Sequence record: NC_041972.1
Length of the DNA stretch: 64,000 nt
Reading direction: 5' to 3' (one strand)
Both the position numbers and the translations under genes were made by a program. Below are positions 5,425 to 63,452 of the stretch, piece by piece. Below the pieces are notes generated by a model. It worked only from the letters and a program-made list of their open reading frames with translations, searched no databases and was not told the DNA's origin. Numbering within the stretch: the first letter of the stretch is position 1; each line of letters starts with the position of its first letter.

Positions 5425-5452
5425 GGAGAGCTTCGGCTCTCCTTTATGCCGG
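5425..5452 (+). terminator. Hairpin + TTTATGCCGG element
   Basis: GGAGAGC-TTCG-GCTCTCC followed by TTTATGCCGG, 10 nt after a stop codon. Confidence 0.75.
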
Positions 5453-5687
5453 CCAGGTTTTCCACCCATCTCCTCTATCGGACAACAGATATAGATAGCG
5501 TCTGATCAACGTCATTGATTACACCTTATTCTACGACCCCAACGTAACCTGTCGACATTCATAAGGGAATGCCACACCGTTGTTTATGTCCGTTCTTATA
5601 AAAGAAGCGACCAAGCAAAAGACCAATAACCCGCAAGCCTTCTTTAAACTAAACCTGTTCTCTTTTCTTATTAATCTGGAGTGTTGT

Positions 5688-6020
5688 ATGGATTTCTCAT
5701 TTCTACTTGATCAAAACCCGTTGAGCTATTACAAAAACGAGTTACCGGCCTTAGTCCGTGAACTTAATCGCTCGATGGAAGATGATGCCCGTGTTTCCTG
5801 TGAAGACGCACTGAATGCGCTGGTGCATCTCTTTGCAACACCGGGTGAGCTCATCAGCCTTACTATTCAGCGCCACTGTAGCATCGCTGAGCAGAAGCTG
5901 CGTTATACGGCAAAGTTCATCAATGACACGGTGGTCACGGTCGAAGGACCTGAACCAATGGATCTGCGCTATGTGCTAGGGACTGCAGTATTTAACGCCA
6001 TTACCATTCCTATCAAATAA
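5688..6020 (+). CDS. Hypothetical protein (110 aa)
   Basis: ATG 5688 preceded by GGAG; track start at 5580 lacks an RBS. Confidence 0.65.
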   Translation: MDFSFLLDQNPLSYYKNELPALVRELNRSMEDDARVSCEDALNALVHLFATPGELISLTIQRHCSIAEQKLRYTAKFINDTVVTVEGPEPMDLRYVLGTAVFNAITIPIK

Positions 6021-6022
6021 AT

Positions 6023-6062
6023 CGGCATAAGAGGAGAGGCATTTGCCTCTCCTCTGTTATGC
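6023..6062. terminator. Bidirectional hairpin element between convergent genes
   Basis: CGGCATAA-GAGGAGAGGC-ATTT-GCCTCTCCTC-TGTTATGC followed by a T-run. Confidence 0.8.
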
Positions 6063-6080
6063 TACTTCTTTTTTTTTGGT

Positions 6081-11344: not shown

Positions 11345-11377
11345 CCGGCATAATGAGGGGTCGTCACTGACCCCTCA
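11345..11377 (-). terminator. Hairpin element with TATGCCGG tail on the minus strand only
   Basis: CCGGCATAA-TGAGGGGTC-GTCACT-GACCCCTCA. Confidence 0.6.
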
Positions 11378-11423
11378 AAAGTAATCCTATGTTTACACCA
11401 CCTCTACGCCTAAGGAGAACCAC

Positions 11424-16101: not shown

Positions 16102-16155
16102 CAGCATAAAGACAGAGAGCTTCCTTGCGGAGGCCCTCTGTCTTGTTTATGCCGG
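16102..16155. terminator. Bidirectional hairpin element between convergent genes
   Basis: CAGCATAAA-GACAGAG...CTCTGTC-TTGTTTATGCCGG. Confidence 0.75.
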
Positions 16156-24051: not shown

Positions 24052-24077
24052 GGGGGAGGCGACTCCCCCTTTCTTTA
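24052..24077 (+). terminator. Rho-independent-type terminator
   Basis: GGGGGAG-GCGA-CTCCCCC followed by TTTCTTT. Confidence 0.7.
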
Positions 24078-24092
24078 TTGAAAGGAGTTGCC

Positions 24093-27548: not shown

Positions 27549-27598
27549 ATCGGCATAGAGGGAGAGGTGTTAGCCTCTCCCTCGTGCTTTATGCCGAT
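27549..27598. terminator. Bidirectional hairpin element between convergent genes
   Basis: ATCGGCATA ... TATGCCGAT perfect 9-bp inverted repeat flanking AGGGAGAGG-TGTTAG-CCTCTCCCT. Confidence 0.8.
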
Positions 27599-35255: not shown

Positions 35256-35287
35256 GGGAGGGGCGCAGGCCTCTCCCTTTTATGCCG
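35256..35287 (+). terminator. Hairpin + TTTTATGCCG element
   Basis: GGGAGGGGC-GCAG-GCCTCTCCC-TTTTATGCCG. Confidence 0.75.
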
Positions 35288-40414: not shown

Positions 40415-40446
40415 GGGGTGAGTGAAAACTCACCCTTTATGCCGGC
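40415..40446 (+). terminator. Hairpin + TTTATGCCGG element
   Basis: GGGGTGAGT-GAAA-ACTCACCC then TTTATGCCGG. Confidence 0.75.
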
Positions 40447-46557: not shown

Positions 46558-46587
46558 AAGAGGACTTCGGTCCTCTTTTATGCCCGG
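46558..46587 (+). terminator. Hairpin + TTATGCCCGG element
   Basis: AAGAGGAC-TTCG-GTCCTCTT-TTATGCCC. Confidence 0.75.
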
Positions 46588-47574: not shown

Positions 47575-47604
47575 GGAGAGGCGCATAGCCTCTCTCTTAT
47601 GCCG
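47575..47604 (+). terminator. Hairpin + TTATGCCG element
   Basis: GGAGAGGC-GCATA-GCCTCTCT-CTTATGCCG. Confidence 0.75.
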
Positions 47605-48032: not shown

Positions 48033-48034
48033 TC

Positions 48035-48466: not shown

Positions 48467-48467
48467 C

Positions 48468-49421: not shown

Positions 49422-49713
49422 AGAAATCAAACTGATCAGTGGTGATGAAGAACGTGGCGAAGCTTCGTATTTAGTCGAAAGTGAATACGAAGCCCGTGAC
49501 GCGTATCAACATTTCATTGAGCACTATACTGGCGATTCAATCACCGATGGCGAAGATCAGTGGCACACGGTTGCCAGTGAAGGATTCCTCAGTGACCTTG
49601 ACTATCCGGTGATTGTGATCTTCTACATCAACTGGGATCATGCTGACCGTCACGAAGTGAAGTCCGTTCCCGTCAATGGTTTGAGTGCGCTTGCGCCTCA
49701 TCTGTTCAAATAA
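49405..49713 (+). CDS. Small acidic hypothetical protein
   Basis: GTG start with GGAGG RBS. Confidence 0.6.
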   Translation: MEQSNEEIKLISGDEERGEASYLVESEYEARDAYQHFIEHYTGDSITDGEDQWHTVASEGFLSDLDYPVIVIFYINWDHADRHEVKSVPVNGLSALAPHLFK

Positions 49714-49738
49714 GTTCCATTAACCCAAAGAGGTAATT

Positions 49739-50032
49739 ATGTCGTTCACACTGTCAAAGAAACTCGTTCCTGTTCTGCTCACCGCGAAAGACGGCCGTAA
49801 GTACGCCGTTGTTAATGGCGGTAACCGCGCCAAGCTGACCCTCGGCTTTGATGACGGGATCAGTCAGGAGGTTGCTGTGCCTTCTGAGCAGATTCCTGAA
49901 GAAGCGCGCACCAACGGCACCAAACTGTATTTCGATGCAGAAGGTGCGGTGACGGGCTGGGATGCAGCACCGGGTGGAAAGACGAAGTCAAGCACGACTG
50001 CCGGATCAATGACCATGCGTCGTCCTGGCTAA
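49739..50032 (+). CDS. Small hypothetical protein
   Basis: 97 aa, GAGG RBS. Confidence 0.7.
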   Translation: MSFTLSKKLVPVLLTAKDGRKYAVVNGGNRAKLTLGFDDGISQEVAVPSEQIPEEARTNGTKLYFDAEGAVTGWDAAPGGKTKSSTTAGSMTMRRPG

Positions 50033-50040
50033 ACCATCAG

Positions 50041-50066
50041 GGGGAGGGAAACCTCCCCTTATGCCG
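50041..50066 (+). terminator. Hairpin + TTATGCCG element
   Basis: GGGGAGG-GAAA-CCTCCCC-TTATGCCG. Confidence 0.75.
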
Positions 50067-50078
50067 TATGGAGGGGTT

Positions 50079-50609
50079 ATGAGTTTATTGATCTACACTG
50101 ACGGGCTGTTAATCGGTGATCGTCGGGGAACACGTAATGCAGAGCATGAGCGATTCATCCGTGACATGAAGAAGACCCATGTTTCGAAATGCAAACGCTT
50201 AGCGTTAGGGGTGGTAGGGGAAGAGATTCATCCAACAGATCTGCCAAAGGTGATGACCTTCTTTATTAACTCGCTGACCGATCACTATCACCGTGAGCAT
50301 GATGTGGGCTATGCCCACAGTTATAGCGAAGAAGAGTCATTGGTAGCTGGCCTTGAGAATCGTCGTTTTATCCTGATGACAGCTGACCGGGCGTTTATCA
50401 TTAACTTCGGCTCTTTGACTGAGATCACTCACGAGCCCTGGTATTGCTCAGGTAACGGAATGGCGATGGCCGATGTCTTTCTGACTGCAGGGATGTCGCC
50501 AGGGAAAGTAATTGAAGCGGTAGCCAAACTCAATCTGGAAGTGGGGCATTCATTTACCCGTGTCGAACAGTCTCGCTTAAAACCCTTGATTAAGAAGGTG
50601 GAAGAATGA
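50079..50609 (+). CDS. Ntn-hydrolase/HslV-like fold protein (putative)
   Basis: GGAGGGG RBS; MSLLIYTDGLLIGDRR N-terminal strands and CSGNGMAMA..AGMSPGKVIEAVAK resemble HslV-like AIGSG..A.GA..AVE.A. Confidence 0.45.
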   Translation: MSLLIYTDGLLIGDRRGTRNAEHERFIRDMKKTHVSKCKRLALGVVGEEIHPTDLPKVMTFFINSLTDHYHREHDVGYAHSYSEEESLVAGLENRRFILMTADRAFIINFGSLTEITHEPWYCSGNGMAMADVFLTAGMSPGKVIEAVAKLNLEVGHSFTRVEQSRLKPLIKKVEE

Positions 50610-51124
50610 GTGGCATATTCGCAGCCCAAGGACGTAACCTGGTGTTTCCTACTCAACTGGAGAAAAGGAGTGGGCTTTACTACACCCCGCCTCCTGAAGC
50701 GTGCTGGATGCCCTGGGGGCGTTACTTCCCACTGTCAGCAACCAGCTTCAATATCCTCGAGCATTTCATGACCGGAGAAGATCTGCCACGGGAGAGTTCA
50801 TACTCGACGCACGTGCTCGGTATTCTGGTCACACCAAACGGACTGATCTACGAATACATCAATACCGTTGAAGGGATTAGACGGCGGGTTGTTCCTTTGG
50901 GTAAAGGTGCAGTGTATTGTCGCTCCGATGATCCATTGCTGGAAGAAGCTATGACAGCAGCGATGGTAGTCCATGACCAGCTGGTTGACGCCATTACACT
51001 GGTAGGGAAGTCCCGCAAACTGATGACCCATCAGTACAAATATACAACACTGGACAAAGTATATGCGGAAATAAAGGAACGTAAAATTGTCCTGCAACCG
51101 CCCACGAGGAATAATCTAATTTAA
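50606..51124 (+). CDS. Hypothetical protein, possible distant partner/paralog of 50079
   Basis: ATGA coupling; similar size and secondary-structure pattern. Confidence 0.55.
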   Translation: MSGIFAAQGRNLVFPTQLEKRSGLYYTPPPEACWMPWGRYFPLSATSFNILEHFMTGEDLPRESSYSTHVLGILVTPNGLIYEYINTVEGIRRRVVPLGKGAVYCRSDDPLLEEAMTAAMVVHDQLVDAITLVGKSRKLMTHQYKYTTLDKVYAEIKERKIVLQPPTRNNLI

Positions 51125-51149
51125 CCCCTGTTTATATAGAAAGGAAAAT

Positions 51150-51596
51150 ATGAACAACTTTATTAACGATGCTTTAGATATCATTGAACTTAACGAAAGT
51201 AGTGCACGTACTGAACTCTGCCGCAAGCAGGAAGCTTCGTTACCGGCCTATATTCTCAAACTGGCGACCCGACTGGCCAAGAAGATTGCCTATGCAGTTC
51301 GCTTAATGGAGAAACGCGATGAAGGGTATGTTCGTCTTGGTACTTATAGCGATCGCTGGTTACTCTGTTTTGGTGACCGCATCAGCCGTTATGGCATGCA
51401 TACGTCGGGTAAGCATGCGCTCTATCTTACCTTGGATTGGGCTACTTTTATCCGTGACCATAAGTTATTTGACGTGGCAAATCACCTACTTCAATTGGCT
51501 CTGGGCAAGTTGCTTCCTGGGCATTGTGTGTTACTGGGCGGTGAAACACCCAAACACGAATTCGAGTTCGTGATCTGCAAACAAACAATAAAATAA
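51150..51596 (+). CDS. Hypothetical protein
   Basis: 148 aa, AAAGGA RBS. Confidence 0.65.
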   Translation: MNNFINDALDIIELNESSARTELCRKQEASLPAYILKLATRLAKKIAYAVRLMEKRDEGYVRLGTYSDRWLLCFGDRISRYGMHTSGKHALYLTLDWATFIRDHKLFDVANHLLQLALGKLLPGHCVLLGGETPKHEFEFVICKQTIK

Positions 51597-51607
51597 GAGA
51601 GGGCGCC

Positions 51608-52027
51608 ATGCCACAGCGTGGTACAACACCGAGCTTTGCAGAATTCACACAGCAAGAACTGGCAGAGAAGGTAATCCCGATACTGCCAGACTACTGTAAC
51701 CGTCTTTGTGGGGTCATGATCAGCACATGCTTTGCACATCGCGTTGGGCTTACTGACAAATCTGTACTGCGTTTTGCTGAGTATCACTTCAACCCCACGC
51801 CCGACCTAGCGCGACAAACAGACTGGTCGGTGGAAGTGCGAAGTGAGCAGTGTGTGGTTTATGAGCTCAACATCCCCAAGTTTGTCCACGAGGCTGGATT
51901 GGTAAAGCAGTTTTTAGATATCCTCTCCAGCCATCTTGAACTTTATTTCACTGACAGCAAGGTACTCCTCGGTCATGTACTCCCGCCGTGCTTCCTTACT
52001 ATCCGCATTGAGAAAACAACACCATGA
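51608..52027 (+). CDS. Hypothetical protein
   Basis: 139 aa, GAGGG RBS. Confidence 0.65.
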   Translation: MPQRGTTPSFAEFTQQELAEKVIPILPDYCNRLCGVMISTCFAHRVGLTDKSVLRFAEYHFNPTPDLARQTDWSVEVRSEQCVVYELNIPKFVHEAGLVKQFLDILSSHLELYFTDSKVLLGHVLPPCFLTIRIEKTTP

Positions 52028-52791
52028 ATCTTTATCTCGTCTCTGACAGTCGTTATACCCCGCCAGGTGATTTCTACAACAACTGGCTAGTCCACGCTAA
52101 TAGTCGTGACAATGCCGCGATGTTGTGTAATTCACGTTGTCTGGTTGATACCTTTGAGATCGGTAGCCTGAACTACAACAACGGCGAACTGATCATGATG
52201 CACAAGACCGTCCAGCACACGGATGAACCGCGTCTGAAGCAGAAAGTTGGTGATGCACTGTATTATCCTTTAACGGTATCACCTGACAGCAGTGCCTTTG
52301 ACCGTATCATTGGTGAGATCGTGAACAAAGCCGCCTCTCCGTTACCGGAAGGTGTCTCTGTCGATCGCCTTCTCATCAATGCTGACAGTCCTGAAGCGCT
52401 GTTCTTTATCTCGCGCCATGACTTTGGTAGTTCGCGTTGTTACTACAAAATCCCCAGTGAACTCGACAGCCAGATCTCTAAACTGCTGGACTTCAATAAA
52501 GGCGAGCGTATTCCCCGTACGTCCCACGAACCGGTTGCGCTCTCCTGGCGCAGTCGGCTCTCCCTCATGATCGCGCGTCAGCATGATGATGCGTACAACC
52601 ATGAGAAGCTGGAGATCTACCGTAAAATGGCATTTGATCTGGTAGCTGCTGCGACTGACCACGAGAACGCTGCACTCGCGATACTGGACCCGGACCAACC
52701 CGAATTCAAAGTCTGGATGCCGGGAATTGATGAAGAGAAGATCCATCAAGCGCTGGATGCGTTTGGCGCACCACGTCAGTTAGGGGAATAG
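52024..52791 (+). CDS. Hypothetical protein
   Basis: 255 aa, ATGA coupling. Confidence 0.7.
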   Translation: MNLYLVSDSRYTPPGDFYNNWLVHANSRDNAAMLCNSRCLVDTFEIGSLNYNNGELIMMHKTVQHTDEPRLKQKVGDALYYPLTVSPDSSAFDRIIGEIVNKAASPLPEGVSVDRLLINADSPEALFFISRHDFGSSRCYYKIPSELDSQISKLLDFNKGERIPRTSHEPVALSWRSRLSLMIARQHDDAYNHEKLEIYRKMAFDLVAAATDHENAALAILDPDQPEFKVWMPGIDEEKIHQALDAFGAPRQLGE

Positions 52792-52802
52792 CCTATTATA
52801 TA

Positions 52803-52916
52803 GGTTGTAACTCAATGGGATGGTGATCACATCTTCCGCGGGTGAGGGTTAGAACCCGGCTGTGGCCGCATAGCCAAAGTCGGTTAATCAAAGTCGACGG
52901 ATTTGGATTACCCGGC
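52803..52916 (+). ncRNA. Degenerate tRNA-like remnant(s); not a canonical tRNA
   Basis: D-loop-like TAACTCAATGG, imperfect CACAT-CTTCCGC-GGGTG arm, T-arm-like GGGTTAGAACCC, then second D-loop-like TAGCCAAAGTCGGTTAA; stems are broken. Confidence 0.25.
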
Positions 52917-52976
52917 GTGACTTGTCATTGTTTCACTTTGTTCTACTACACAAACAGCTCAACTCTCTCATAATTC

Positions 52977-53007
52977 AAGGGGTGGGGTAACTCACCCCTT
53001 TATGCCG
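52977..53007 (+). terminator. Hairpin + TATGCCG element
   Basis: AAGGGGTGGG-GTAA-CTCACCCCTT-TATGCCG. Confidence 0.75.
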
Positions 53008-53022
53008 CAAGGATCTATTATC

Positions 53023-53355
53023 ATGCAAGAACTCTTTAAAAACTACGGTCCGTACATTTTCGATGTGCTCATTTTCGTCATGGTGTTCGCCTGGTGCTTC
53101 TGTGGCAGTGGCGGTACGCGTGATGCTAAGACCAAGAAGGCACGTTACGGTATTCCTACTGCTGTAGCGCTGGCGGTGGTGCTGGTGATCCATGGGTTGG
53201 GTCGTTTTGACGCCTATCTGGAGAAAGGCACTTGTGATGACTTACCGCCCGGCACTGGTGTGATGATCCATGACAAGTGTTACAAGCAAATCGACGGGTC
53301 AGGGTACGTGCCGGTAAATACTACGGTGTATAGAAAGGACGGTGAACATGGATGA
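53023..53355 (+). CDS. Small two-TM membrane protein
   Basis: AAGGA RBS; two hydrophobic helices and a C-terminal Cys pair. Confidence 0.65.
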   Translation: MQELFKNYGPYIFDVLIFVMVFAWCFCGSGGTRDAKTKKARYGIPTAVALAVVLVIHGLGRFDAYLEKGTCDDLPPGTGVMIHDKCYKQIDGSGYVPVNTTVYRKDGEHG

Positions 53356-53551
53356 TCTGTGGCTGTACATTTCAATCTTTATCCTCTGTTACGTCTGGGC
53401 GCTGTTCAAACTACCACCTACAGGTAATAAAAGAAAGTATTACCTGTACCCTGGTATCGTCTCGTTAGCGTTCTGCTTAGGGGTAACTGCCATAAAACAT
53501 TGCAGTGATTCAACCGCCCAATACCAATCGCTTTACGCGACACGACAATAA
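53348..53551 (+). CDS. Small two-TM membrane protein
   Basis: Overlaps upstream stop; two hydrophobic helices. Confidence 0.6.
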   Translation: MDDLWLYISIFILCYVWALFKLPPTGNKRKYYLYPGIVSLAFCLGVTAIKHCSDSTAQYQSLYATRQ

Positions 53552-53554
53552 CGG

Positions 53555-53582
53555 GAGGAGGCTTTGGCCTCCTCTTATGCCG
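53555..53582 (+). terminator. Hairpin + TTATGCCG element
   Basis: GAGGAGGC-TTTG-GCCTCCTC-TTATGCCG. Confidence 0.75.
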
Positions 53583-53652
53583 ACTATTCTTTTTTGGTTA
53601 TTTCCTACATCTACCCGCAAATCATTTAGCCCATTATACGCTGGAGTTATTC

Positions 53653-54204
53653 ATGGAAAAGATTACGAGTGATACGATCCTTGCTAAGTTACGTGAGGTG
53701 GCAGAAACAAACAAAGAAAACCAACATCGGAAACTCCGCTCAATAAGCCAAACCATGGCGTACAACATTGAAGCGATCGTCGAGTTGATTGCGTTATCGG
53801 GTGAGATGTACCTTGATCTGCTTGATCGACACAAGGTTGATGAGATTATAGAACCGCATTACAAAGGCAATCAACGGGCTTACAGTCGATTGAGCCATAC
53901 CGCCTCTATTCACACGGGCATGGAGTACCTTGCCGGCAACGCGCACATCTACACCAACGATGAGGGTAAAGAAGCAGTACGAATCGTCTGCACCTTTAAG
54001 TTTAAGCGCGACTTCCTGCAACCTAGCTTATTACCTAAGGTACTTCACTACTGTCTGCAGGAGCTTAAGCCGCAACTTGGTGACAGTGGTGTTGTCCACT
54101 TCCGCACACAGGGTGAGCTGGAACCCCCTCATCTTAAAGCCATTCCGGGCTGGCACGTCGACGCTAACGTCCGTGATAACTCCATTGTCATTAGTTTACG
54201 TTAA
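53653..54204 (+). CDS. Hypothetical protein
   Basis: 183 aa, GGAG RBS. Confidence 0.7.
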   Translation: MEKITSDTILAKLREVAETNKENQHRKLRSISQTMAYNIEAIVELIALSGEMYLDLLDRHKVDEIIEPHYKGNQRAYSRLSHTASIHTGMEYLAGNAHIYTNDEGKEAVRIVCTFKFKRDFLQPSLLPKVLHYCLQELKPQLGDSGVVHFRTQGELEPPHLKAIPGWHVDANVRDNSIVISLR

Positions 54205-54214
54205 GGAACCAAAC

Positions 54215-54925
54215 ATGATCGTTGTTGTTGTTGATACTGAATCGACTGCTTTGGATGAGCTCGCGGGTATTCTGAGTTTGTCCGCTATTCGCACTAACGT
54301 GGCTGACATGAGTTGCATTAAGCACCTGATCGGCGTGCACCAAGCCGGCAAGACGCATGACGACATCTTCCATGCCGTATTGAACCTCAATGAACAATAC
54401 GTGATGGGTCGTACCTTCTTGCAAAGCACGCAGGATTGGTGGATGAAGAAAACCACCCCGGCGGCGAAGGCTTCAGTAACCGGACCAACGCAGTCTGCAA
54501 AAGATGCTTTGACAGCATTTGTGGTTTTCATCGAAAAGGCCATTGAGGCGACGATTAACGAACGCGGGGAGAAAGCGAAGGTCCAGCTGTACTACCGTGG
54601 CGACTTCGATGCTAAAGCCATTGCGTCCCTGGCAAAAGCGGTGGGTGTTGAACTCCCGTATATTTTCAATCAGAACAAAGAAATCCGCACATATATCGAT
54701 GCCAAGCTGGACACGGATATCGGTTATATCCCGTGGCTCGGTTACCCAGAAGGACTGGGGCGCCATAGCTCACTCGATGATGTTCTAATCGATGGCTTCG
54801 AGATGGCGGTGGCCTATCGCATCAATCACCTCGAAAAGTTCGATAAAAAGTCGGTGCCGGGCGAGATCGCCAAACTGAAAGAAACGTACCCTGTTCCGGA
54901 GAAAACCCATGCAAAATCTAAATGA
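54215..54925 (+). CDS. DEDDh 3'-5' exonuclease (T4 DexA-like)
   Basis: AAGGA RBS at ATG 54215; VVVDTEST (ExoI), GDFDAKAI (ExoII), EIRTY, HSSLDD (ExoIII). Confidence 0.8.
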   Translation: MIVVVVDTESTALDELAGILSLSAIRTNVADMSCIKHLIGVHQAGKTHDDIFHAVLNLNEQYVMGRTFLQSTQDWWMKKTTPAAKASVTGPTQSAKDALTAFVVFIEKAIEATINERGEKAKVQLYYRGDFDAKAIASLAKAVGVELPYIFNQNKEIRTYIDAKLDTDIGYIPWLGYPEGLGRHSSLDDVLIDGFEMAVAYRINHLEKFDKKSVPGEIAKLKETYPVPEKTHAKSK

Positions 54926-55631
54926 CCGTATCTTTGCCAATTATGATGGTTACATTGAAGCTATTGATGCACATTTTAAACCTACCTATCAACTGCAGCT
55001 GGCTGAGCAAGTCATCCCGGTTGAGCAGATGGACAAGCTTGTAACCTGGATGGACCACAACGCCCATGTCAAGGGCACAACCGTCTACCTGATGGAGTTG
55101 GTGCCTGATCTCGATAAACCGCATCCTGCACAATCAGAGATGCGTGTGTTTATTGCACTCGGTATGTTTAATCGTGAAGTCAACCCTGATTTGCCTTACT
55201 GGTGTCATGTACATCGCCATTACCCGGTTAACCTCGCTGTCGACTTGATTGTTACTGACCTGCAGGGCGTTCCTGTAACCCATGCCGTTCTGACTGCGTT
55301 TAAGTCATTTGATCGAGCGCGTACCTACAGGGATAATCTCGGCGGCAAAGGTGGGCATCAACCGCATCACGAAATCCATACTGGCATTATTGACCAAAGT
55401 GGTAAGGTGATCTTCGAAACCTACGGGAATATCAACTGGTATACCAAGAATGCCATTCGCCTGCTGGCTGAACGACAGATCTTGCAGGAAGACACTGAAC
55501 TGTCGGCAATCTGGTTACTGGCTGGTTTAAAAGCGGGTGTTAACTGGAAAGTCGAAGACCATGTTGACATCATGAAAGCAATCGATACTTTCCGTCCGAG
55601 GAATACCCATGATTTTAACGGCTATGTTTAA
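54909..55631 (+). CDS. Hypothetical protein
   Basis: 240 aa, overlaps upstream gene end. Confidence 0.65.
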   Translation: MQNLNDRIFANYDGYIEAIDAHFKPTYQLQLAEQVIPVEQMDKLVTWMDHNAHVKGTTVYLMELVPDLDKPHPAQSEMRVFIALGMFNREVNPDLPYWCHVHRHYPVNLAVDLIVTDLQGVPVTHAVLTAFKSFDRARTYRDNLGGKGGHQPHHEIHTGIIDQSGKVIFETYGNINWYTKNAIRLLAERQILQEDTELSAIWLLAGLKAGVNWKVEDHVDIMKAIDTFRPRNTHDFNGYV

Positions 55632-56373
55632 GAAGTGCTTTGGCGCGTCGTCTGTCTATAAAGAAGATGATGGCAGTACACGCATTACCGCTGACCAGTA
55701 TGAACTTACGCTGGGTCGATCCTACCATCCTAAGCTCAAGCGTAAGGTGGGTCGGGGATTTGGCTTCTATGTCGAAAATGGCGAGAAGCTCGAGTTCGTC
55801 TTGCGGGGTTACTGGTTTGTGTTGATCGCCTGGAGCAAGAAGCGCAAATCACTCAAGTGGGACGAAGCGGAGAATGCACCGACCTACGGCTTCAATGTTG
55901 TTGACTCTGACTTAGCGATCTATCTCGGCAACGAATCCGCTAAGTCAGACAAACACATCAGCATGCGTAGTCGCAGCAAATACATCCCCCTGCCCTGGGC
56001 CTGGACCTTCCATAAGCGTGAAGTGTTAACCACCCGTGACACCTGGGCTGATGTCAAAGAAGGTGCGTTGTCTCAAGAGTGGTCGTTCCCCGCCACATAC
56101 GTCACCAAGCACAATGAAGTGCAAGAGATGATGATCGAAGCGAAGATGGAGCGCATGACCTGGCGCCTGGCATGGCTCCCTTGGTTCGTACCGGTTACCA
56201 AGAAAGACCGCTCGGCGAGTTACAAGTACCACGGGAACGGTGGTAACGGGGTTGGTCACGACGCCAGTGGCTGGAAAGGCGGGGTCATCGGTGGCGGGGT
56301 CATCATGCGAGACAATGAACACAACCCGAAAGAAACATTCGACCGTTTAATTAAAGAGCAGCATTACGGCTAA
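55624..56373 (+). CDS. Hypothetical phage protein
   Basis: Trp-rich; C-terminal SGWKGGVIGGG motif. Confidence 0.65.
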   Translation: MFKKCFGASSVYKEDDGSTRITADQYELTLGRSYHPKLKRKVGRGFGFYVENGEKLEFVLRGYWFVLIAWSKKRKSLKWDEAENAPTYGFNVVDSDLAIYLGNESAKSDKHISMRSRSKYIPLPWAWTFHKREVLTTRDTWADVKEGALSQEWSFPATYVTKHNEVQEMMIEAKMERMTWRLAWLPWFVPVTKKDRSASYKYHGNGGNGVGHDASGWKGGVIGGGVIMRDNEHNPKETFDRLIKEQHYG

Positions 56374-56385
56374 GAAGGAAAACAC

Positions 56386-57537
56386 ATGCGTCAGTATTTG
56401 GATGGGATTCGTTACATCTTTGAGAACGGGTCACAACGAGGGGATCGCACCGGGGTAGGTACGTTGTCGGTGTTCTCGATGAAGCAGACTTACGATCTGC
56501 GTCTGGGATTCCCACTGGTCACCAGTAAGAAAGTGCGTATCGATTTTATTATCGAAGAGCTCATCTCCTTCCTGTCGGGTAATCCCGATATGCCGGGTGT
56601 GGGTATCTGGGATGATTGGCGTGTTAAAGACGAAGTCTCTCGTGAAGTCCCGTTAGAGAACCACGAGCGTTTAAAACTCTGGGTTGAGAAGTCGGACCTG
56701 AAGTATAACGTTGCTTACCTTCAACTCAATGCGATGGGTTCTGTCGAAGCGGGTCATCGTTTCCTGGATGAGCAAGGGATTCCACGTAACAGAAAAGAAG
56801 TACTGGTAGCAGAAGGTGCACTCAATGCACCCTATGGGCCAGCGTGGCGTGCGTGGAAAGGTCGTCTGGGCGAAGTGCATGATCAGATCGGTTATCTGCT
56901 CAAGTTGCTTAAAAACAATCCTACGAGCCGTCGTATGCTATTGTCTGCCTGGGACCCAGCGAACATGCCGGATGAGTCTATCAGCCCGCAGGATAACATC
57001 ATTGATGGCAAGCCACCTCTGACTCCGTGTCATTGGGCGTTTGAGCTGTACACTGACGAAATCCTGGCAGAGGAACGCCTTGATTGGGTCGAAGCTAACG
57101 CACCTAGCCTCTGGGAAGACTACAATGATCGTTCAGGACGTGGTCAATGGTTAGGCGACACAGACAGTAAGCGCCTTCATGAATTCCTGGACGAAGCCGG
57201 CGTACCGAAGTATTACCTGGATATGAAGTATCACCAACGTTCCTGTGACTATATGGTTGGCGTGCCGTATAACATCGCCAGCTATGCGGTGTTGCAGCAC
57301 ATGTTCGCCGCCACCTGTAACATGATCCCGCGGATACTGGAAGCGGATATGACTAACATCCATATCTACAACTTCCACAAAACCAATGCGGTCATGCAGG
57401 CCAGTCGCAGCCCACGCGCACTACCCACTCTGAAGGTACTCGCCGCTCACGATAAGTTGGAAGACTATACGTTGGAAGACTTTGAACTCGAAGGTTATGA
57501 TCCGCATCCTTTTATTAAATATGAAAGAGCGGTCTGA
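56386..57537 (+). CDS. thyA: Thymidylate synthase with two insertions
   Basis: DRTGVGT, FPLVTSKK, IWDDW, SRRMLLSAW, PCH (catalytic Cys), HQRSCD, VPYNIASY (Asn, dUMP-specific), HIYNFH. Confidence 0.97.
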   Translation: MRQYLDGIRYIFENGSQRGDRTGVGTLSVFSMKQTYDLRLGFPLVTSKKVRIDFIIEELISFLSGNPDMPGVGIWDDWRVKDEVSREVPLENHERLKLWVEKSDLKYNVAYLQLNAMGSVEAGHRFLDEQGIPRNRKEVLVAEGALNAPYGPAWRAWKGRLGEVHDQIGYLLKLLKNNPTSRRMLLSAWDPANMPDESISPQDNIIDGKPPLTPCHWAFELYTDEILAEERLDWVEANAPSLWEDYNDRSGRGQWLGDTDSKRLHEFLDEAGVPKYYLDMKYHQRSCDYMVGVPYNIASYAVLQHMFAATCNMIPRILEADMTNIHIYNFHKTNAVMQASRSPRALPTLKVLAAHDKLEDYTLEDFELEGYDPHPFIKYERAV

Positions 57538-57569
57538 TCCATTGGTGCGTTGAAGGGAGCACAACGGTA

Positions 57570-57935
57570 ATGAAGAGAGAGTCCAGTTACACCCTGGTCT
57601 TTGGGGAAGGTAGTACTGAAGAAGATGTCAATACCCTGCGTGAGATGGTGTCACACATGCGGGGGTTGACCGGGTTGTCGCAGCTGGGGGCGTTTGAGGT
57701 GTTCGTTACCCATTATGAATTGCAACGTAAAGACGCAGGGCTGATCATCAGTGATCTTCCAGTGAATGCACAGTCGTTGTTTGATGTCAGTGATCGACAG
57801 AACTGGCTGACACCGCTGTTCACTTCCCGGGGGTTAGTGGCGTGTGACTTGTTGTTGCTGTTGAAGCAAGGCAAATGGGCCGGAGAACACCTCAAGGTGA
57901 CCTTTCGGGTAAAGGGTATCAGGGCGAAAGCATAA
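57570..57935 (+). CDS. Hypothetical protein
   Basis: 121 aa, GGGAG RBS. Confidence 0.65.
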   Translation: MKRESSYTLVFGEGSTEEDVNTLREMVSHMRGLTGLSQLGAFEVFVTHYELQRKDAGLIISDLPVNAQSLFDVSDRQNWLTPLFTSRGLVACDLLLLLKQGKWAGEHLKVTFRVKGIRAKA

Positions 57936-57936
57936 C

Positions 57937-57969
57937 GCATACGGAGGGGTCATTCCCTCCGCTATGCCG
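57937..57969 (+). terminator. Hairpin + CTATGCCG element
   Basis: GCATA-CGGAGGG-GTCATT-CCCTCCG-CTATGCCG. Confidence 0.7.
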
Positions 57970-58003
57970 ATTAAGTTTTTAACAAAGTTTACTGCAGATC
58001 TTT

Positions 58004-58020
58004 TCAGACCTATATCACGT
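58004..58020 (+). promoter_or_regulatory. Candidate phage early promoter TCAGACCTATATCACGT
   Basis: 15/17 identical to 40041-40057; TATATCAC is one mismatch from phiKZ TATATTAC. Confidence 0.6.
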
Positions 58021-58067
58021 CGGTGAATAACCTTTCACTAATTAACCAATCCGTAAGGAGTTTTATC

Positions 58068-59444
58068 ATGGCTGCATTAAAATCTAAAGTTGAACTGTTT
58101 CACTGGTATCAGGAACTGAAAACTGAATTTAAAACCGGCAAGATTACCGTGTTCGAATTTGAGCGGCAAGTGCTCAGCGAAATTCTTTCCCTGACCGATA
58201 CTGGTAAAACACCATCTACTGCCAAAATCAGTCTGGTAGTGGACATCCTTAATTCTGTGGTTTTTGATCATGTGTTTACCGCAGACGGTATCATTGACCT
58301 GGACAACATGCTCGCTCGTGAACACGTACGCAACATTTCGGAATTGACGGCAGCACGCAATAACTTTATTACCATACAAGCCCAGGCCCGTCTGAACAAA
58401 GAAAAGGAACAGACTGCGAAACCAGCAGAGCAGAAGGCGTTTGCCAAGTTTCCAACGAAAGAAGAGCTCGAATATTGGGTTAATGCCAGAAAGCTATTCC
58501 GTTATGGTAACCCCAATACGCTCGGCACTGAAGCATACCAGGAGGTTGTCAAATACTGGCATCTGGTCGATAAATATCTGGGTACATTAAAACTGGAACT
58601 GGATCACACCGACCCTAACTACGTCGATAACATCCTGTTGATTGACTACTTTGTATCGTTGGTCGCCAAGCAAGAGGTTCCTGAGGAAGAACGCAGGCAT
58701 CTGAAAGACACACTTAGCAGTCTATATGCGTGCCCCATTAAAACCCCACACATCGATGCATTTGTCGAACGTGACCAACACCCCCTTCCAGTTAAGCCAA
58801 AACAACCACCCATCGCGCAACAAGCCATCGACCGCGCTATTGCCTGGCGTGAAGAGGAAACCAAAACAAACCATCAGCAAAAAGACATATTACGAGAATT
58901 CGCCGATCAATACTGTCCGGTAATGGTGGCCAAGCAACATGCCACTCAGCAGTTGTTTGATTTCGTTGCTCGTGCGGTGAAACGTGTCTTGACCGCCATT
59001 GCTCAGCCAAACAACCCGGAAGACGCCGAGATGCTGGCAAAAGGTCATGCCATCAACATTCTCAATGTTAAGCATGGTGTAATTGGTGTCAGTACCACGA
59101 TTACCAGAAACGGTCTGGTCAAGTTACGCATCTTCGCTGAACGTGAACTATGTAACGAGGACTACGGTATTCCGACTCTGTCGTATAATCAAGTCCGTCA
59201 ATCACCTCATGCAACGTTCAGCATACCAATGCCGGCACTGATAGATGGGTTCATTAACATGTGGGATATCCCTAATCAGGCCCCTCGCCATATGCATAAT
59301 AGCGTAGGCGGTATGTTGGGTAATCCCTATCCGTTACAGCAGCTTGATGGTTTGATGTCAGCTATTGCAAGAGAAACAGCCGAGTACGGCGTTACGCCTA
59401 CTTATGGCATGATCGAAGACAGCATGATTGTTGTGCTGCATTAA
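58068..59444 (+). CDS. Hypothetical multi-domain protein; shares helical modules with 59508
   Basis: AAGGAG RBS at ATG 58068; 458 aa. Confidence 0.7.
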   Translation: MAALKSKVELFHWYQELKTEFKTGKITVFEFERQVLSEILSLTDTGKTPSTAKISLVVDILNSVVFDHVFTADGIIDLDNMLAREHVRNISELTAARNNFITIQAQARLNKEKEQTAKPAEQKAFAKFPTKEELEYWVNARKLFRYGNPNTLGTEAYQEVVKYWHLVDKYLGTLKLELDHTDPNYVDNILLIDYFVSLVAKQEVPEEERRHLKDTLSSLYACPIKTPHIDAFVERDQHPLPVKPKQPPIAQQAIDRAIAWREEETKTNHQQKDILREFADQYCPVMVAKQHATQQLFDFVARAVKRVLTAIAQPNNPEDAEMLAKGHAINILNVKHGVIGVSTTITRNGLVKLRIFAERELCNEDYGIPTLSYNQVRQSPHATFSIPMPALIDGFINMWDIPNQAPRHMHNSVGGMLGNPYPLQQLDGLMSAIARETAEYGVTPTYGMIEDSMIVVLH

Positions 59445-59451
59445 TTCACAC

Positions 59452-59480
59452 GGGGAGGTTTCCCTCCCCCTTTTATTTTT
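59452..59480 (+). terminator. Rho-independent-type terminator
   Basis: GGGGAGG-TTTC-CCTCCCC followed by CTTTTATTTTT. Confidence 0.75.
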
Positions 59481-59507
59481 TAATTAACCTACTGTGAGAA
59501 TTTAACC

Positions 59508-60209
59508 ATGAACAAAGAAACTTATACTACCTGGTACAATGGATTAAAAGAAAGATTGGCGACTGGGCACATTAATCAAGAACACTACGAGACACTTATT
59601 GTTGACAATCTAAGTTCATTGATTACTCATTTCTTCAATAGTCGATACGACGATGGTCATATGTCTCTGGAGGAGCATTTTGCGTTAGTTAATCATTATT
59701 TCGAACTGGTTGCTGATGCAGAAATATCAGAACGCAGTGCCATGCTCATGGTACGTTCTGTAGCTAGCAGTATTCAAAAGCTACCAGCGGCTAAAGCCTT
59801 CGCAGAGAAACATAACACTCCGGCGCCGTCAATTAAAGAAATTCTTGGTAGTCGACCTGGTTTACTGCGTAAGCATGCTGCCAGCACGACCGAGAAGATG
59901 ATAGGGTGTCCGGTGATCACCCAGGCCAACGAACCTGAGAACGAAGTAACCATTGACTTACCCTGGAAATTGGCATTGCACGTTTACAAAGGGTTCCTGG
60001 TAAAGGCGCTGATGTCAAAGCACGGATATAAATACAGTGATGCGTATAACTACATTACTGATCATCAGAACAAATACGACGAACTCTTGGCAGAAGTCCT
60101 CAACAACATTATTGCTAATGAGGAATCGCATCTGGTGTCGGTAGGTGGCGGCATCACTGCAGCGGGTACTGGTCTGGTGGTAAGCGGGATTATTAAGCCG
60201 GAGGAGTGA
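59508..60209 (+). CDS. Chimeric protein: helical N-module plus RNAP beta'-like fragment (aa ~108-203)
   Basis: SIKEILGSRPGLLRKH..GCPVIT..IDLPWKLALHVYK.FLVKALM parallels beta' [38 protein letters not shown]. Confidence 0.6.
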   Translation: MNKETYTTWYNGLKERLATGHINQEHYETLIVDNLSSLITHFFNSRYDDGHMSLEEHFALVNHYFELVADAEISERSAMLMVRSVASSIQKLPAAKAFAEKHNTPAPSIKEILGSRPGLLRKHAASTTEKMIGCPVITQANEPENEVTIDLPWKLALHVYKGFLVKALMSKHGYKYSDAYNYITDHQNKYDELLAEVLNNIIANEESHLVSVGGGITAAGTGLVVSGIIKPEE

Positions 60210-60769
60210 TGAAAGGAGAGATAGAGACACGCTTCAGAAGACACTACGGCAACCACATTAAACGGGGTAGTGATATCGCAGTGCCTTTATACCACATTAG
60301 TCTACAGAATGACTTGGAGGGGCTATGGCGACCTAAAGCCCCTGACTCGCCATTTGATATTCCGAAGAAACCCAACATCATTACTGAAATGCCGCTCCCG
60401 CGTATCTGTGTAGCACCATCTATCGAACAGTGCTTCTGGGCAATCTATCCCAATATCTCTAAGCTCTTTGAAGAGGAAGAATACGCAGCGGTTTGTTTTG
60501 CGGTTTATCAACCGATTCTGCATGCCGGTATTGCTGTCGTGGATACCAGTACGTTAACGCAATGCCGACTAGTGCACGATGCACATATTACCGGCGAGCA
60601 TTGGTTACTTAGTGATACCACCATGTGTGTGATCGACTTTATTCAGGTTAATAACACCTCACACGGCGAGTTCGTAAAGTTCCATCCGTTTAATACCCCG
60701 GTTGGTAACGAATGGGAGCTCGCCCCTAAAAATGTTGTTTATCATTCACTTAAATTAACGGAGTTGTAA
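60206..60769 (+). CDS. Hypothetical protein, possible ADP-ribosyltransferase-like fold
   Basis: LYHIS, RICVAPS, DAHITGEHW. Confidence 0.5.
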   Translation: MMKGEIETRFRRHYGNHIKRGSDIAVPLYHISLQNDLEGLWRPKAPDSPFDIPKKPNIITEMPLPRICVAPSIEQCFWAIYPNISKLFEEEEYAAVCFAVYQPILHAGIAVVDTSTLTQCRLVHDAHITGEHWLLSDTTMCVIDFIQVNNTSHGEFVKFHPFNTPVGNEWELAPKNVVYHSLKLTEL

Positions 60770-60773
60770 ATCC

Positions 60774-61418
60774 ATGGTAACTGCTAGAAAAGCTAATAAG
60801 ACCTTAGGTGAGCACGCAGTGGCTCATGAGGCAGTAACACGCTTAGGTAGCAACAAGAAAGTCAAACCAGTTAAACCGCTTTGGACACTGGAGAACATCG
60901 AGGACAATCTGGTTGGTCAAGGCATCCTTGCCTACTTGAAACGCCACACGTCGTTATCGATCCGTGATATCAACACCGCGGCTAACCGCCTGACGAAGAT
61001 TGCTGATTCAGATATAAAGGAAGGGAAAGCGCGTGATTACGTGGCACGAGTTATTGGGTACAACAATTACGACGCTCTCAACGTCACCGTTCGTGCAGCG
61101 GTACCTGTGCGCAATCATGTACAACGTCGTAAAGCAAATCAGCCGGTCACAGAGTTGTTGATAGAAGACGAAGAACTGCCGCCGGTAACACGTACTGAAA
61201 TCAACCCCTTGGTGATGTTAGCCCTACAGCGTGAGATCTCTAAACGCGGCTTTCGTCTACTGGGTAAGAACTACCGGGCTTTCGTTAACAAGGATAACCC
61301 CGAGCACACCTTTACGTTGATGCAGGCGTATAACTACCTTGCCAAACAACTGGGTTATCCGGATTATCACTCTATGCCCCGTCAATACCCAATCATTAAC
61401 TTGCGCTACGTCGATTAA
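60774..61418 (+). CDS. Hypothetical protein with two copies of a small helical domain
   Basis: ARDYVARVIGYNNYDAL and AYNYLAKQLGYPDYHSM; GGAG RBS. Confidence 0.65.
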   Translation: MVTARKANKTLGEHAVAHEAVTRLGSNKKVKPVKPLWTLENIEDNLVGQGILAYLKRHTSLSIRDINTAANRLTKIADSDIKEGKARDYVARVIGYNNYDALNVTVRAAVPVRNHVQRRKANQPVTELLIEDEELPPVTRTEINPLVMLALQREISKRGFRLLGKNYRAFVNKDNPEHTFTLMQAYNYLAKQLGYPDYHSMPRQYPIINLRYVD

Positions 61419-61440
61419 CCTATTGTAAGGAATAAAGAAC

Positions 61441-62190
61441 ATGACAACGACTTTCCCGAAAGAGATGAATGCTGCTTTCCATCCTGATAACGAACAAACC
61501 ACCCAGCTGTGCAAAACGATCCAGCAGATCAGCGGGGTGGAGATCAAACGTGTACATGTGGTGATGGCGATCCACCATTACAAACAAAACGATGCGGCAC
61601 ATCAGCCTGACCACATGCTGGCGGTCTTAGCAGAAGCAGCCCACATCATCCAGTCGTTTCCTGACCTGGAGAAATGGCGCACCCAGATCATGTTAGGGTG
61701 TCTGTTCCATGACACCCACTGTCACATCGATCGGGATATGCACCACCTGCTAGGCGCCGAACATGCTCAAGAGGCATTACTGGAGTATGCGTGTGGTTAT
61801 GGGATGTCACGTGCGGATGTCTACCTGATCAGTCAGGCCGTGCTGGAGCATCGGGCTTCCTGGAAGTACCCGCGTATTAACCCTGTATCCAACGCTGTGG
61901 CGTCTGCAGATCGTGGCTACCCTGATCTAAAGAAATACATCCGTCGTGCTGTACAGTACCGTTACAAGCGCACGGCAGTCATCAACATGAACACCATCAT
62001 CGATGAGTCGATCGAGCACATGGTAGAGAAGTTCGGGGATGGCGGTTATGCCTGGGAGAGCTACCCGACATATGCGGCAGTGATGCACGGTGATGCGATC
62101 CAACAAGTGAAGCAACAACTGCGCAGTAAAGAAGGAAAGGCGCAACTCAAAGAGTACGCTGAACTCCACTTTGATGAGTGGGTAGAGTAA
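61441..62190 (+). CDS. HD-domain phosphohydrolase
   Basis: DHMLAV, CLFHD, HHLLGA, EHRAS, SADRG metal-binding pattern. Confidence 0.8.
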   Translation: MTTTFPKEMNAAFHPDNEQTTQLCKTIQQISGVEIKRVHVVMAIHHYKQNDAAHQPDHMLAVLAEAAHIIQSFPDLEKWRTQIMLGCLFHDTHCHIDRDMHHLLGAEHAQEALLEYACGYGMSRADVYLISQAVLEHRASWKYPRINPVSNAVASADRGYPDLKKYIRRAVQYRYKRTAVINMNTIIDESIEHMVEKFGDGGYAWESYPTYAAVMHGDAIQQVKQQLRSKEGKAQLKEYAELHFDEWVE

Positions 62191-62198
62191 GCTACGTG

Positions 62199-62227
62199 GC
62201 CGGAGGATTACCTCCGGCTGTTATGCC
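62199..62227 (+). terminator. Hairpin + TGTTATGCC element
   Basis: GCCGGAGG-ATTA-CCTCCGGC-TGTTATGCC. Confidence 0.7.
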
Positions 62228-62350
62228 TGTTCTTTCTTCTTTGTAATTCCCAACACATTCGGTCTTTGTTATACAAAGGCTATAATCTTTGTCCCGAGCT
62301 AAGGGTAACGTGAACAGTTATGCTGGCTTACTTTTTAAAGGTATCTTTTC

Positions 62351-62881
62351 ATGGATGGTTTATTTAATCTCTCCTCATGGCAATCGCTTTTACTTGTGGT
62401 GGTCGTACTCCTACTGTGGTTGTATTACCAACGACTTCAACACCTGCGTCGTAAGTATCATCGTCGTAATGAACGCATGATGGCGCAGAGCGTGGTCATG
62501 ACATCCCGGCTGTTACTGAGTACCTTCTCGGAGATTGTGGAACGTGCTAAGGAAGAGGACATCTACCAGCGTGATCCTAACTCCCCGATTGCGGCAGACC
62601 GGGCCAGTGCGATGGCCTGCTCCTCCATCTTCAGTGGGTTGTATAACCTGGTTGTGGTGCCCGTCACCACCCTTGATCCGGTGTTCAACGATTTATTGAT
62701 TACCGGTACTGAGCGGGAAGATGTTGAGGAAGGGGTCTTTGTGTCGTTTTATTTGGGTGAACAGCGTAATGATGTGGTTAGGCATTTTATACCCGACCGG
62801 TCGTTACAGGCCTTTATCACCCAAACGCGTGCCTTCAGTGCTTACCTGCGACAGGCTGCGAATACAAAACCACCACAATGA
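62351..62881 (+). CDS. Single-pass membrane protein
   Basis: N-terminal TM followed by basic stretch. Confidence 0.65.
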   Translation: MDGLFNLSSWQSLLLVVVVLLLWLYYQRLQHLRRKYHRRNERMMAQSVVMTSRLLLSTFSEIVERAKEEDIYQRDPNSPIAADRASAMACSSIFSGLYNLVVVPVTTLDPVFNDLLITGTEREDVEEGVFVSFYLGEQRNDVVRHFIPDRSLQAFITQTRAFSAYLRQAANTKPPQ

Positions 62882-62889
62882 GGTGACAC

Positions 62890-63420
62890 ATGACCAATTA
62901 TGGTTTTCTGCTGAACACAGTACTTCTGGCTTTTCTTATTTGGTTTGGTTACCGACTGCACAAGTTGGTGAACAACAGCGAGAAAGCCACCCTCGCCGCT
63001 GATCATAACGCCAAGCTGCGCTTCCTGACCTATGCGGCCCGGCAGATAATGAGTGACTTGTATACGTCGCTCAATCTTCCGACGCTCACTGGGTGTGCGA
63101 AGATGTATCTACGCGATGACGGCAAGCTTGATAATATTGAAGTCATTATGCGACTCTTCATGAAAACCCATAATGAGATTATTACCAAGCTCTCCGAGGG
63201 ATTGGTGTCAGACCATTTGAAGATCACCGATGTTAAAGTTACCCATGATCTGGTGACCAACGAAGTGCTCATCACACTCTTGTATCCGAATAAAGTCACT
63301 GACATCCTGGTCTTCCATCATAACCACCTGGCGCAGGCGATCTACCAACTGGATCGTTTGCAGCATCGGCTCTCAACGTTCCACAAAGCGGTGCCGAACC
63401 GCGACCTGTACCAACTCTAA
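62890..63420 (+). CDS. Single-pass membrane protein
   Basis: GAGG RBS; N-terminal TM; same length (176 aa) as upstream gene. Confidence 0.65.
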   Translation: MTNYGFLLNTVLLAFLIWFGYRLHKLVNNSEKATLAADHNAKLRFLTYAARQIMSDLYTSLNLPTLTGCAKMYLRDDGKLDNIEVIMRLFMKTHNEIITKLSEGLVSDHLKITDVKVTHDLVTNEVLITLLYPNKVTDILVFHHNHLAQAIYQLDRLQHRLSTFHKAVPNRDLYQL

Positions 63421-63423
63421 ATC

Positions 63424-63452
63424 AAGGGAGGGCTTCGGCTCTCCCTTATGCC
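63424..63452 (+). terminator. Hairpin + TTATGCC element
   Basis: AAGGGAGGGC-TTCG-GCTCTCCCTT-ATGCC. Confidence 0.75.

Follow-up and report, generated by a model that had tools for sequence, protein, structure and literature searches.

Hairpins with a TATGCC tail as probable transcription terminators in the genome of Erwinia phage Deimos-Minion

Results

The genome and its intergenic hairpins

We analysed a stretch of 64,000 nucleotides (nt), hereafter called the window, which is identical (100%) to bases 1-64000 of the genome of Erwinia phage vB_EamM_Deimos-Minion (KU886225.1, 273,501 bp, genus Agricanvirus). Deimos-Minion is a nucleus-forming jumbo phage of the phiKZ type, and its GenBank annotation includes split multisubunit RNA polymerases. 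Its capsid protein has around 27% identity with the capsid proteins of phiKZ-like phages and 201phi2-1. Close to the start of the window lies the gene encoding gp2 (1001-2689, plus strand), a homologue of phiKZ gp123 (26% identity, E 3e-52). Short GC-rich hairpins followed by the hexamer TATGCC, which we call the tail, recur between the genes of the window. These elements are the subject of this work. We think that they are factor-independent transcription terminators of the chimallivirus (phiKZ-like) type, a reading to which we give a probability of around 80%.

The entire genome of Deimos-Minion (segments L001-L006) was scanned, so that the motif could be judged genome-wide. For comparison we used DNA of phiKZ (50 kb), 201phi2-1 (60 kb), Goslar (50 kb), pEa_SNUABM_48 (50 kb), and AH06 (70 kb). 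The latter is around 77% identical to Deimos-Minion overall.

Anatomy and enrichment of the elements

A first-pass annotation of the window, made from the sequence, had listed 15 hairpins with a fixed TATGCC(G) tail. All 15 are present, and in each of them a GC-rich hairpin is separated from TATGCC by a spacer of 0-3 bases, mostly T. The hexamer is found at all sites, but the last base of the longer form is not fixed: three tails end in CCC, CCT, and CCA, not in CCG. In fourteen window copies a single hairpin dominates the fold, with an energy of -11.7 to -24.3 kcal/mol and a z value of -2.6 to -6.7; 11 of these 14 leave the tail unpaired.

By itself, TATGCC is only slightly enriched in the window (37 occurrences, 27.9 expected). 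The enrichment is larger for TTATGCCG, with 12 occurrences where 1.8 are expected, and for hairpin-linked TATGCC, with 16 copies as compared with 1.21 ± 1.13 (maximum 5) in 100 dinucleotide shuffles. Genome-wide, TATGCC lies at most 5 nt from 41 of the 1,036 hairpins with a perfect stem, where 1.3 are expected (Poisson p = 5e-46). Forty of these 41 elements are intergenic according to the GenBank annotation, and 39 lie just past a co-oriented stop codon.

The looser anchor TATGC gave 81 hairpin-linked copies in the genome. T comes immediately before TATGC in 63 of them; at the first position after it 54 copies have C and 19 have T, and at the second position 53 have G. Copies of TATGC without a hairpin have a flat base composition downstream. 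The degenerate form TATG-Y-Y-G (Y, pyrimidine) is linked to a hairpin in 61 copies, among which 44 have CCG. We also drew logos on every TAT downstream of a fold of -13 kcal/mol or lower, but fortuitous structures within coding DNA blurred them, and they served only as a qualitative guide. An unbiased count of the 5-mers that follow hairpins ranked TATGC and TTATG highest in Deimos-Minion and AH06, and TTATG and TATGT highest in phiKZ and 201phi2-1.

The TATGCC tails have 3-4 T among the first 8 nt after the stem, and thus lack the U-tract of the canonical intrinsic terminator, in which at least 5 of the 8 nt that follow the stem are U. Between 44 and 64 kb, a scan for T-tracts (at least 5 T in 8 nt) recovered the hairpin at 59452 and none of the TATGCC-tailed elements of the plus strand. 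No Rfam family matched anywhere in the window. The elements had been regarded as a second class beside classic U-tract terminators, such as those at 24052 and 59452. Pure T-tracts do exist, but they are rare: of 88 post-stop hairpins, only 4 are followed by a plain T-tract, 46 have the TATGC tail, and 14 have a different tail with TTAT. The two classes are not cleanly separate, since the tails at 24052 and 59452 also contain TTTAT, and TTAT is therefore common to both.

Distribution among gene junctions

We took 18 convergent and 18 divergent gene junctions, genome-wide, from the annotation. Exact TATGCC occurs on at least one strand of 17 of the 18 convergent junctions, and the remaining junction has no spacer at all. 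The opposite strand usually bears a copy with one or two mismatches that ends in CT. The tail or a near copy had first been noticed on both sides of the convergent junctions at 6.0, 16.1, and 27.5 kb; this holds, and the association extends to the 17 junctions of the genome. Divergent junctions, in contrast, have TATGCC in at most one case out of 18, in a copy at the very edge of the junction (Fisher p = 7e-8, compared with convergent junctions). Two-sided elements, i.e., those with a reverse-complement tail upstream of the hairpin, make up 18 of 29 elements at convergent junctions and 6 of 52 elsewhere, over a background of 0.8%. A tail that is present where no promoter is needed and nearly absent where promoters are required follows the pattern of a terminator.

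Conservation of the tail and variation of the stem

We compared 15 orthologous pairs of elements of Deimos-Minion and AH06. The tail is identical at 117 of 120 positions, whereas the next 10 nt are identical at 96 of 150 (p = 9e-13); the hairpin region is 75% identical over these pairs. The stems differ from those of AH06 by compensatory changes at 6.03 and 35.26 kb, and by outright replacement at 47.6, 53.6, and 57.9 kb. A tail-anchored MAFFT alignment left the stems out of register and was discarded in favour of a loop-anchored alignment of 29 tetraloop copies. In the latter, all nine stem pairs differ on both sides and 97.3% of the cells are paired, but the copies were picked by folding, so the percentage is circular and the alignment shows only that the stem sequences differ. 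The initial impression of variable stems with a constant tail was therefore correct. The anatomy of the elements, their position, orientation, and conservation, and their identity with a published motif (see below) are all observed in Deimos-Minion itself.

Some hairpins are nonetheless repeated together with their tails. Identical copies lie far apart in the genome (96812, 172677, and 272610), and further identical or near-identical pairs are found at position 6068 of segment L004 and 4096 of segment L006, and at position 5445 of the window and 24898 of segment L005. These distant copies could result from duplication, from gene conversion, or from convergence on a favoured stem.

The elements might then be a dispersed repeat used for recombination or the shuffling of modules, in the manner of the PeSLs (promoter/stem-loop repeats) of T4-like phages, with a secondary role in transcription. 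The identical copies at distant sites fit such a role, as do the stems that were wholly replaced between Deimos-Minion and AH06 and the six tails that adjoin an early-type promoter motif (see below). The PeSLs provide a precedent, in the terms in which they are cited in PMC5348500. However, the 8 nt common to all copies are too short for homologous exchange, and the strict orientation with the upstream gene and the post-stop position point to transcription. Furthermore, a MEME/FIMO search for repeats in the paper describing the genus gave no significant result (PMC6690015). We consider this explanation highly improbable.

Correspondence with mapped terminators of related phages

The terminators of two relatives have been mapped. 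In phiKZ, cappable sequencing on the Oxford Nanopore Technologies platform (ONT-cappable-seq) delineated 133 termination regions (Putzeys et al. 2024, PMC10914365), and in 61 intrinsic terminators the stem-loop leads into a common motif, TTAT-K-Y-Y-G-T (K, G or T; PMC10914365). In 201phi2-1, a closely similar motif A is present in 59 terminators and a second motif lengthens the stem (PMC11512511). Eight terminators of this phage stopped transcription in uninfected Pseudomonas cells in an in vivo reporter assay (PMC11512511). Our scans found hairpins followed by TATG-Y-Y-G in each of the phages compared: 10 in phiKZ, 15 in 201phi2-1, 7 in Goslar, 12 in pEa_SNUABM_48, and 21 in AH06. A search of IMG/VR with a 14-base gapped pattern returned 119 matches, among which around 16 have a true hairpin and the remainder are mostly chance; the true-hairpin matches, among those with a readable contig size, are mostly on contigs of 218-310 kb.

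The coordinates of transcription termination sites printed for these eight terminators of 201phi2-1 (PMC11512511) allowed us to place the RNA 3' ends on the motif. Each of the eight lies within the pyrimidine pair that precedes the conserved G (on the second pyrimidine in seven cases, on the first in one), and TTTATGCCG is exact at three of the eight sites, as in Deimos-Minion. The RNA 3' end at 132,419, the sole site that we counted base by base, is 7-8 nt past the stem. Hence, the tail is transcribed, stands in the place of the U-tract, and has its G as the next base to be added. The RNA 3' ends at the motif and the termination of reporter transcripts come from the relatives; by analogy, the transcripts of Deimos-Minion would end at its elements. 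Together with the position, orientation, and conservation of the elements, the 3'-end maps of the relatives uphold the early proposal of a non-canonical terminator whose tail is under sequence selection.

The terminators may work as follows. The nascent RNA would fold the GC-rich hairpin just beyond the stop codon, and the polymerase would transcribe 7-9 nt more, with the 0-3 spacer bases and UUAUGCC forming the last RNA:DNA hybrid in replacement of the U-tract. The polymerase would then stop once the RNA ends in a pyrimidine, just before the conserved G would be added. Of the two halves of the tail, the one proximal to the stem is U-rich and could make a weak hybrid that the hairpin is able to disrupt. 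The other half (G-pyrimidine-pyrimidine/G) would most likely serve as a pause signal, keeping the polymerase at the distance required.

Several points weigh against the terminator reading. The hairpin listed at 11345 exists and has TATGCCG, but its tail is on the minus strand (11346-11377), opposite to both flanking genes, and is not conserved in AH06. An SPN3US-like phage keeps TTAT but has T's after it, and G-Y-Y-G is thus not universal. In the published logo of phiKZ, the 5' arm is rich in C and the 3' arm in G, a composition that the stems of Deimos-Minion do not share. The 5' ends obtained by ONT are good to around 2 nt only (PMC11512511), we assume the 3' ends to be no better, and these 3' ends cannot tell termination from trimming or processing. 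Finally, we found no transcript data for Agricanvirus in the literature searched, so termination in Deimos-Minion rests on motif homology.

The inability of 3'-end maps to separate termination from processing leaves room for elements acting only in the processing or the stability of RNA. Transcription would read through, a nuclease would cut in the single-stranded UUAUG, and the hairpin would protect the new 3' end. An unpaired, A/U-rich tail beside a stable hairpin suits this role. Yet elements of the same type cut the expression of a downstream reporter in vivo as strongly as lambda T0 (PMC11512511), two-sided copies are specific to convergent junctions, and the mapped 3' end falls short of the conserved G. 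We regard a role in processing alone as very unlikely.

It had also been suggested that the elements are specific for a phage RNA polymerase. This is doubtful, because terminators of the same type from 201phi2-1 stop the host polymerase in uninfected cells (PMC11512511). The same result speaks against a pause based on promoter recognition, in which the pocket of the non-virion RNA polymerase that recognises TATG at promoters, under the beta-lobe, would re-capture the non-template TATG during elongation, the polymerase would stall 2-3 nt further on, and the hairpin would release a transcript without a U-tract. Such a pause would account for the 201phi2-1 3' ends, which are 2-3 nt past the G, and for a tail that is kept across genera with around 27% capsid identity as the polarity of the stem flips. 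The contact itself has a basis: gp123 reads the same four bases in single-stranded non-template DNA (PMC12809450), and its homologue is encoded in the window. However, putative early operons, which would be read by the virion polymerase, also end in the tail, and the SPN3US-like TTATTT tails lack the G. If true, it would mean that one protein-DNA contact sets both the late starts and the transcript stops and replaces the U-tract; we find it rather unlikely.

Promoter motifs and the TATG of the tail

The TATG of the tail is, as was pointed out at first, the late-promoter core of phiKZ: with +1 at the G, it is necessary for transcription in vitro, and no bases are conserved after it (PMC4666361). 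It is bound in single-stranded non-template DNA by gp123, a subunit of the non-virion RNA polymerase (PMC12809450). We looked at the promoter motifs of Deimos-Minion. CCTATG has 45 occurrences, is not enriched, and is mostly found in coding DNA, and we could not define late promoters from the sequence. The same is reported in the literature (PMC7598289).

A different motif, CCTA-Y-ATTA-Y, has 23 copies genome-wide. Every copy is on the plus strand, and almost all of them lie in intergenic DNA upstream of genes. The window has copies at 32748 and 40047, and one at 60050 inside gp73. The motif fits an AT-rich class of early promoters described for phiKZ-like phages (PMC7598289), and is probably an early promoter used by the virion RNA polymerase. 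Six of the 23 copies are 20-35 nt downstream of a TTATGCCG tail, and the others are separate from tails, except for one before a hairpin. This copy, at 79653, directly precedes a terminator hairpin, an arrangement that is possibly an attenuator or produces a short RNA of the 5' untranslated region.

One site is a candidate late promoter of the TATG type. It consists of a CCTATGT stretch (11380-11396) around 30 nt upstream of gp8, which encodes a virion protein. The stretch is identical in AH06 and similar in pEa_SNUABM_48, its flanks differ between the phages, and the adjoining hairpin bears TTATGCCG on the opposite strand. Promoters of the sigma-70 type were not enriched in 44001-64000 (22 matches, 24.4 expected), in line with transcription independent of the host polymerase.

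These results bear on the suggestion that the elements re-initiate late transcription. The TATG of the tail would then be a working late promoter of the non-virion RNA polymerase, where one transcript ends and the next one starts at the G. The identity with the core bound by gp123 (PMC4666361, PMC12809450) is in agreement with this suggestion, and so are the presence in Deimos-Minion of the gp123 homologue gp2 and the location of most tails 15-135 nt upstream of the next start codon. Coupling of terminators with promoters is reported in bacteria. Yet the tail is not placed like a late promoter, i.e., at divergent junctions and upstream of late genes. It occurs at 17 of 18 convergent junctions and at most one of 18 divergent ones, and it is frequent in the block of small non-structural genes at 33-100 kb. 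P119L, the best-studied late promoter, lies in a divergent region and has a single TATG that is not preceded by a hairpin. The bases after TATG are conserved in Deimos-Minion, and this is not the case in the late promoters of phiKZ. Six tails have a separate early-type motif downstream, and the mapped 3' ends of 201phi2-1 are 2-3 nt downstream of the would-be start. Re-initiation at the tail is thus not needed and poorly supported, and we give it little credence.

Elements of the window and consequences for annotation

The elements of the window are listed in Table 1. Most follow a gene in its own orientation, in agreement with the reading of the elements as terminators.

Table 1. Hairpin elements of the window, with their tails and their counterparts in AH06. 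Positions are those of the window.
Element	Position	Strand	Remarks
Putative terminator after gp4	5424..5451	+	8-bp stem, TTCG loop, T, TATGCCG; tail identical in the AH06 orthologue
Putative terminator after gp6, convergent junction gp5/gp6	6023..6055	-	11-bp stem, then TATGCCG; two compensatory stem changes in AH06
gp5-side reading of the gp5/gp6 hairpin	6030..6064	+	Near-copy tail TATGCTA, then T-run
Hairpin with TATGCCG, antisense to gp7 (+) and gp8 (+)	11346..11377	-	Exception in the set; tail not conserved in AH06
Putative terminator after gp13, convergent junction gp13/gp14	16109..16154	+	Long interrupted stem, GTT, TATGCCG
gp14-side reading of the gp13/gp14 hairpin	16102..16144	-	Near-copy tail TATGCTG
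Putative terminator after gp20, convergent junction gp20/gp21	27552..27596	+	Tail TATGCCG
gp21-side reading of the gp20/gp21 hairpin	27551..27583	-	Tail TATGCCG
Putative terminator after gp29 (lytic transglycosylase)	35256..35287	+	9-bp stem, TTT, TATGCCG; compensatory G-C to A-T change in AH06
Putative terminator after gp41	40415..40444	+	Hairpin and TATGCC, folded
Putative terminator after gp52	46558..46585	+	Tail TATGCCC; tail ATG annotated as gp53 start
Putative terminator after gp53	47575..47604	+	Stem wholly different in AH06, tail identical
Putative terminator after gp58	50040..50066	+	Tail ATG annotated as gp59 start
Putative terminator 186 nt after gp63	52977..53007	+	Tail ATG annotated as gp64 start
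Putative terminator after gp65	53554..53582	+	Stem replaced in AH06, tail identical
Putative terminator after gp71	57942..57969	+	Tail CTATGCCG; minus-strand near copy at 57928-57967 with tail TATGCTT
Putative terminator after gp76	62198..62228	+	Tail TATGCCT
Putative terminator after gp78	63425..63453	+	Tail TATGCCA (TATGCCG in AH06)
T-rich putative terminator after gp19	24052..24080	+	Tail contains TTTAT
T-rich putative terminator after gp72	59452..59481	+	Tail contains TTTTAT, then T-run

When the ATG of the tail is taken as a start codon, the reading frames are short and random, except for three that run into the next gene. The annotated starts of gp53, gp59, and gp64 (46580, 50061, and 53002) are ATG codons within a terminator tail. 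Stronger pairs of a Shine-Dalgarno sequence and an ATG are found downstream of these starts, e.g., at 50075, and the AH06 orthologues of gp53 and gp64 have annotated starts further downstream. The start annotations of these three genes are likely over-extended.

Two other observations concern the genes of the window. Between gp63 and the hairpin at 52977 there is a stretch of 186 nt (52792-52976) without annotated genes. The annotation of AH06 splits the thymidylate synthase into two parts, on either side of an HNH homing endonuclease (segment L009, 7027-9021), and in Deimos-Minion gp70 is one open reading frame; the AH06 gene has a probable insertion of the intron or intein type.

Discussion

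Significance of the tail

The tail gives a simple and testable rule for delimiting the transcription units of Deimos-Minion and, by extension, of the other phages of Agricanvirus, with around 60-80 such stops in 273 kb. It also casts doubt on three annotated gene starts, which probably were placed at the ATG of a terminator tail. The deeply conserved part of the chimallivirus terminators, in phages of Pseudomonas, Escherichia, and Erwinia, is the 8-nt tail and not the sequence of the hairpin. This tail stands at a constant offset from mapped 3' ends and contains the core of the late promoter, which makes termination without a U-tract addressable with existing transcriptome tables and structures.

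Comparison with known systems

Canonical Rho-independent terminators have, like the elements described here, a GC-rich hairpin followed by a U-containing stretch. The likeness extends to two features seen in the relatives: a 3' end about 7-9 nt after the stem, and activity with a bacterial polymerase. The elements differ from the canonical ones in that just 3-4 of the 8 nt that follow the stem are U, and in a distal half that is fixed as G-C-C and then G. The consensus elemental pause of multisubunit RNA polymerases has G-10, Y-1, and G+1 (PMC6062546). The elements resemble it by the pyrimidine at the RNA 3' end, as mapped in the relatives, and by the G that comes next. They differ from it in Deimos-Minion by the lack of G at -10, because the 3' arm of the stem is rich in C and T.

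The late promoters of phiKZ have TATG in common with the tail, and Deimos-Minion encodes a homologue of the subunit that reads it. However, the tail is distributed as transcript ends are, and neither the preceding hairpin nor the conserved bases after the G are features of these promoters. The RNA polymerase of T7 is a single-subunit enzyme, and its class II termination signal needs no hairpin. This signal resembles the tail in being a fixed short sequence that contributes to termination by a phage polymerase, but the elements of Deimos-Minion always have a hairpin. The PeSLs of T4-like phages (Comeau et al. 2014), as far as they are described where cited in PMC5348500, are also dispersed intergenic stem-loops, and some elements of Deimos-Minion similarly lie beside an early-type promoter motif. 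The promoter is inside the repeat in the PeSLs, going by that same description, whereas in Deimos-Minion only six of the 23 early-type motifs have a tail next to them and the copies have 8 nt in common.

The terminators of phiKZ and 201phi2-1 are the systems with which the published motif is shared. This class of terminators is therefore already known, but it is apparently undescribed for Agricanvirus in the literature that we searched. The paper on the genus of these Erwinia phages, where MEME/FIMO had no significant result, describes neither terminators nor promoters (PMC6690015). The elements of Deimos-Minion have the stable GC-rich stem-loop of the chimallivirus motif, TTAT immediately 3' of the stem, then G or T, two pyrimidines, a G, and usually a T. 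They also share the location after genes, along the incoming transcript, and the two-sided form between convergent genes, in phages that encode their own multisubunit RNA polymerases.

The main difference is that the polarity of the stem is reversed. In Deimos-Minion and AH06, purines prevail in the 5' arm (purine fraction of 0.68 and 0.76) and pyrimidines in the 3' arm, whereas the purine fraction of the 5' arm is 0.19 in phiKZ, 0.23 in 201phi2-1, and 0.24 in Goslar. Since pEa_SNUABM_48 mixes both polarities (0.48), and one of the ten phiKZ copies is purine-first, we regard the composition of the arms as a descriptive trait of these terminators, not a defining one. The phages also differ in host and genus, with capsid proteins around 27% identical, and the tail of Deimos-Minion is more uniform than those of phiKZ and 201phi2-1.

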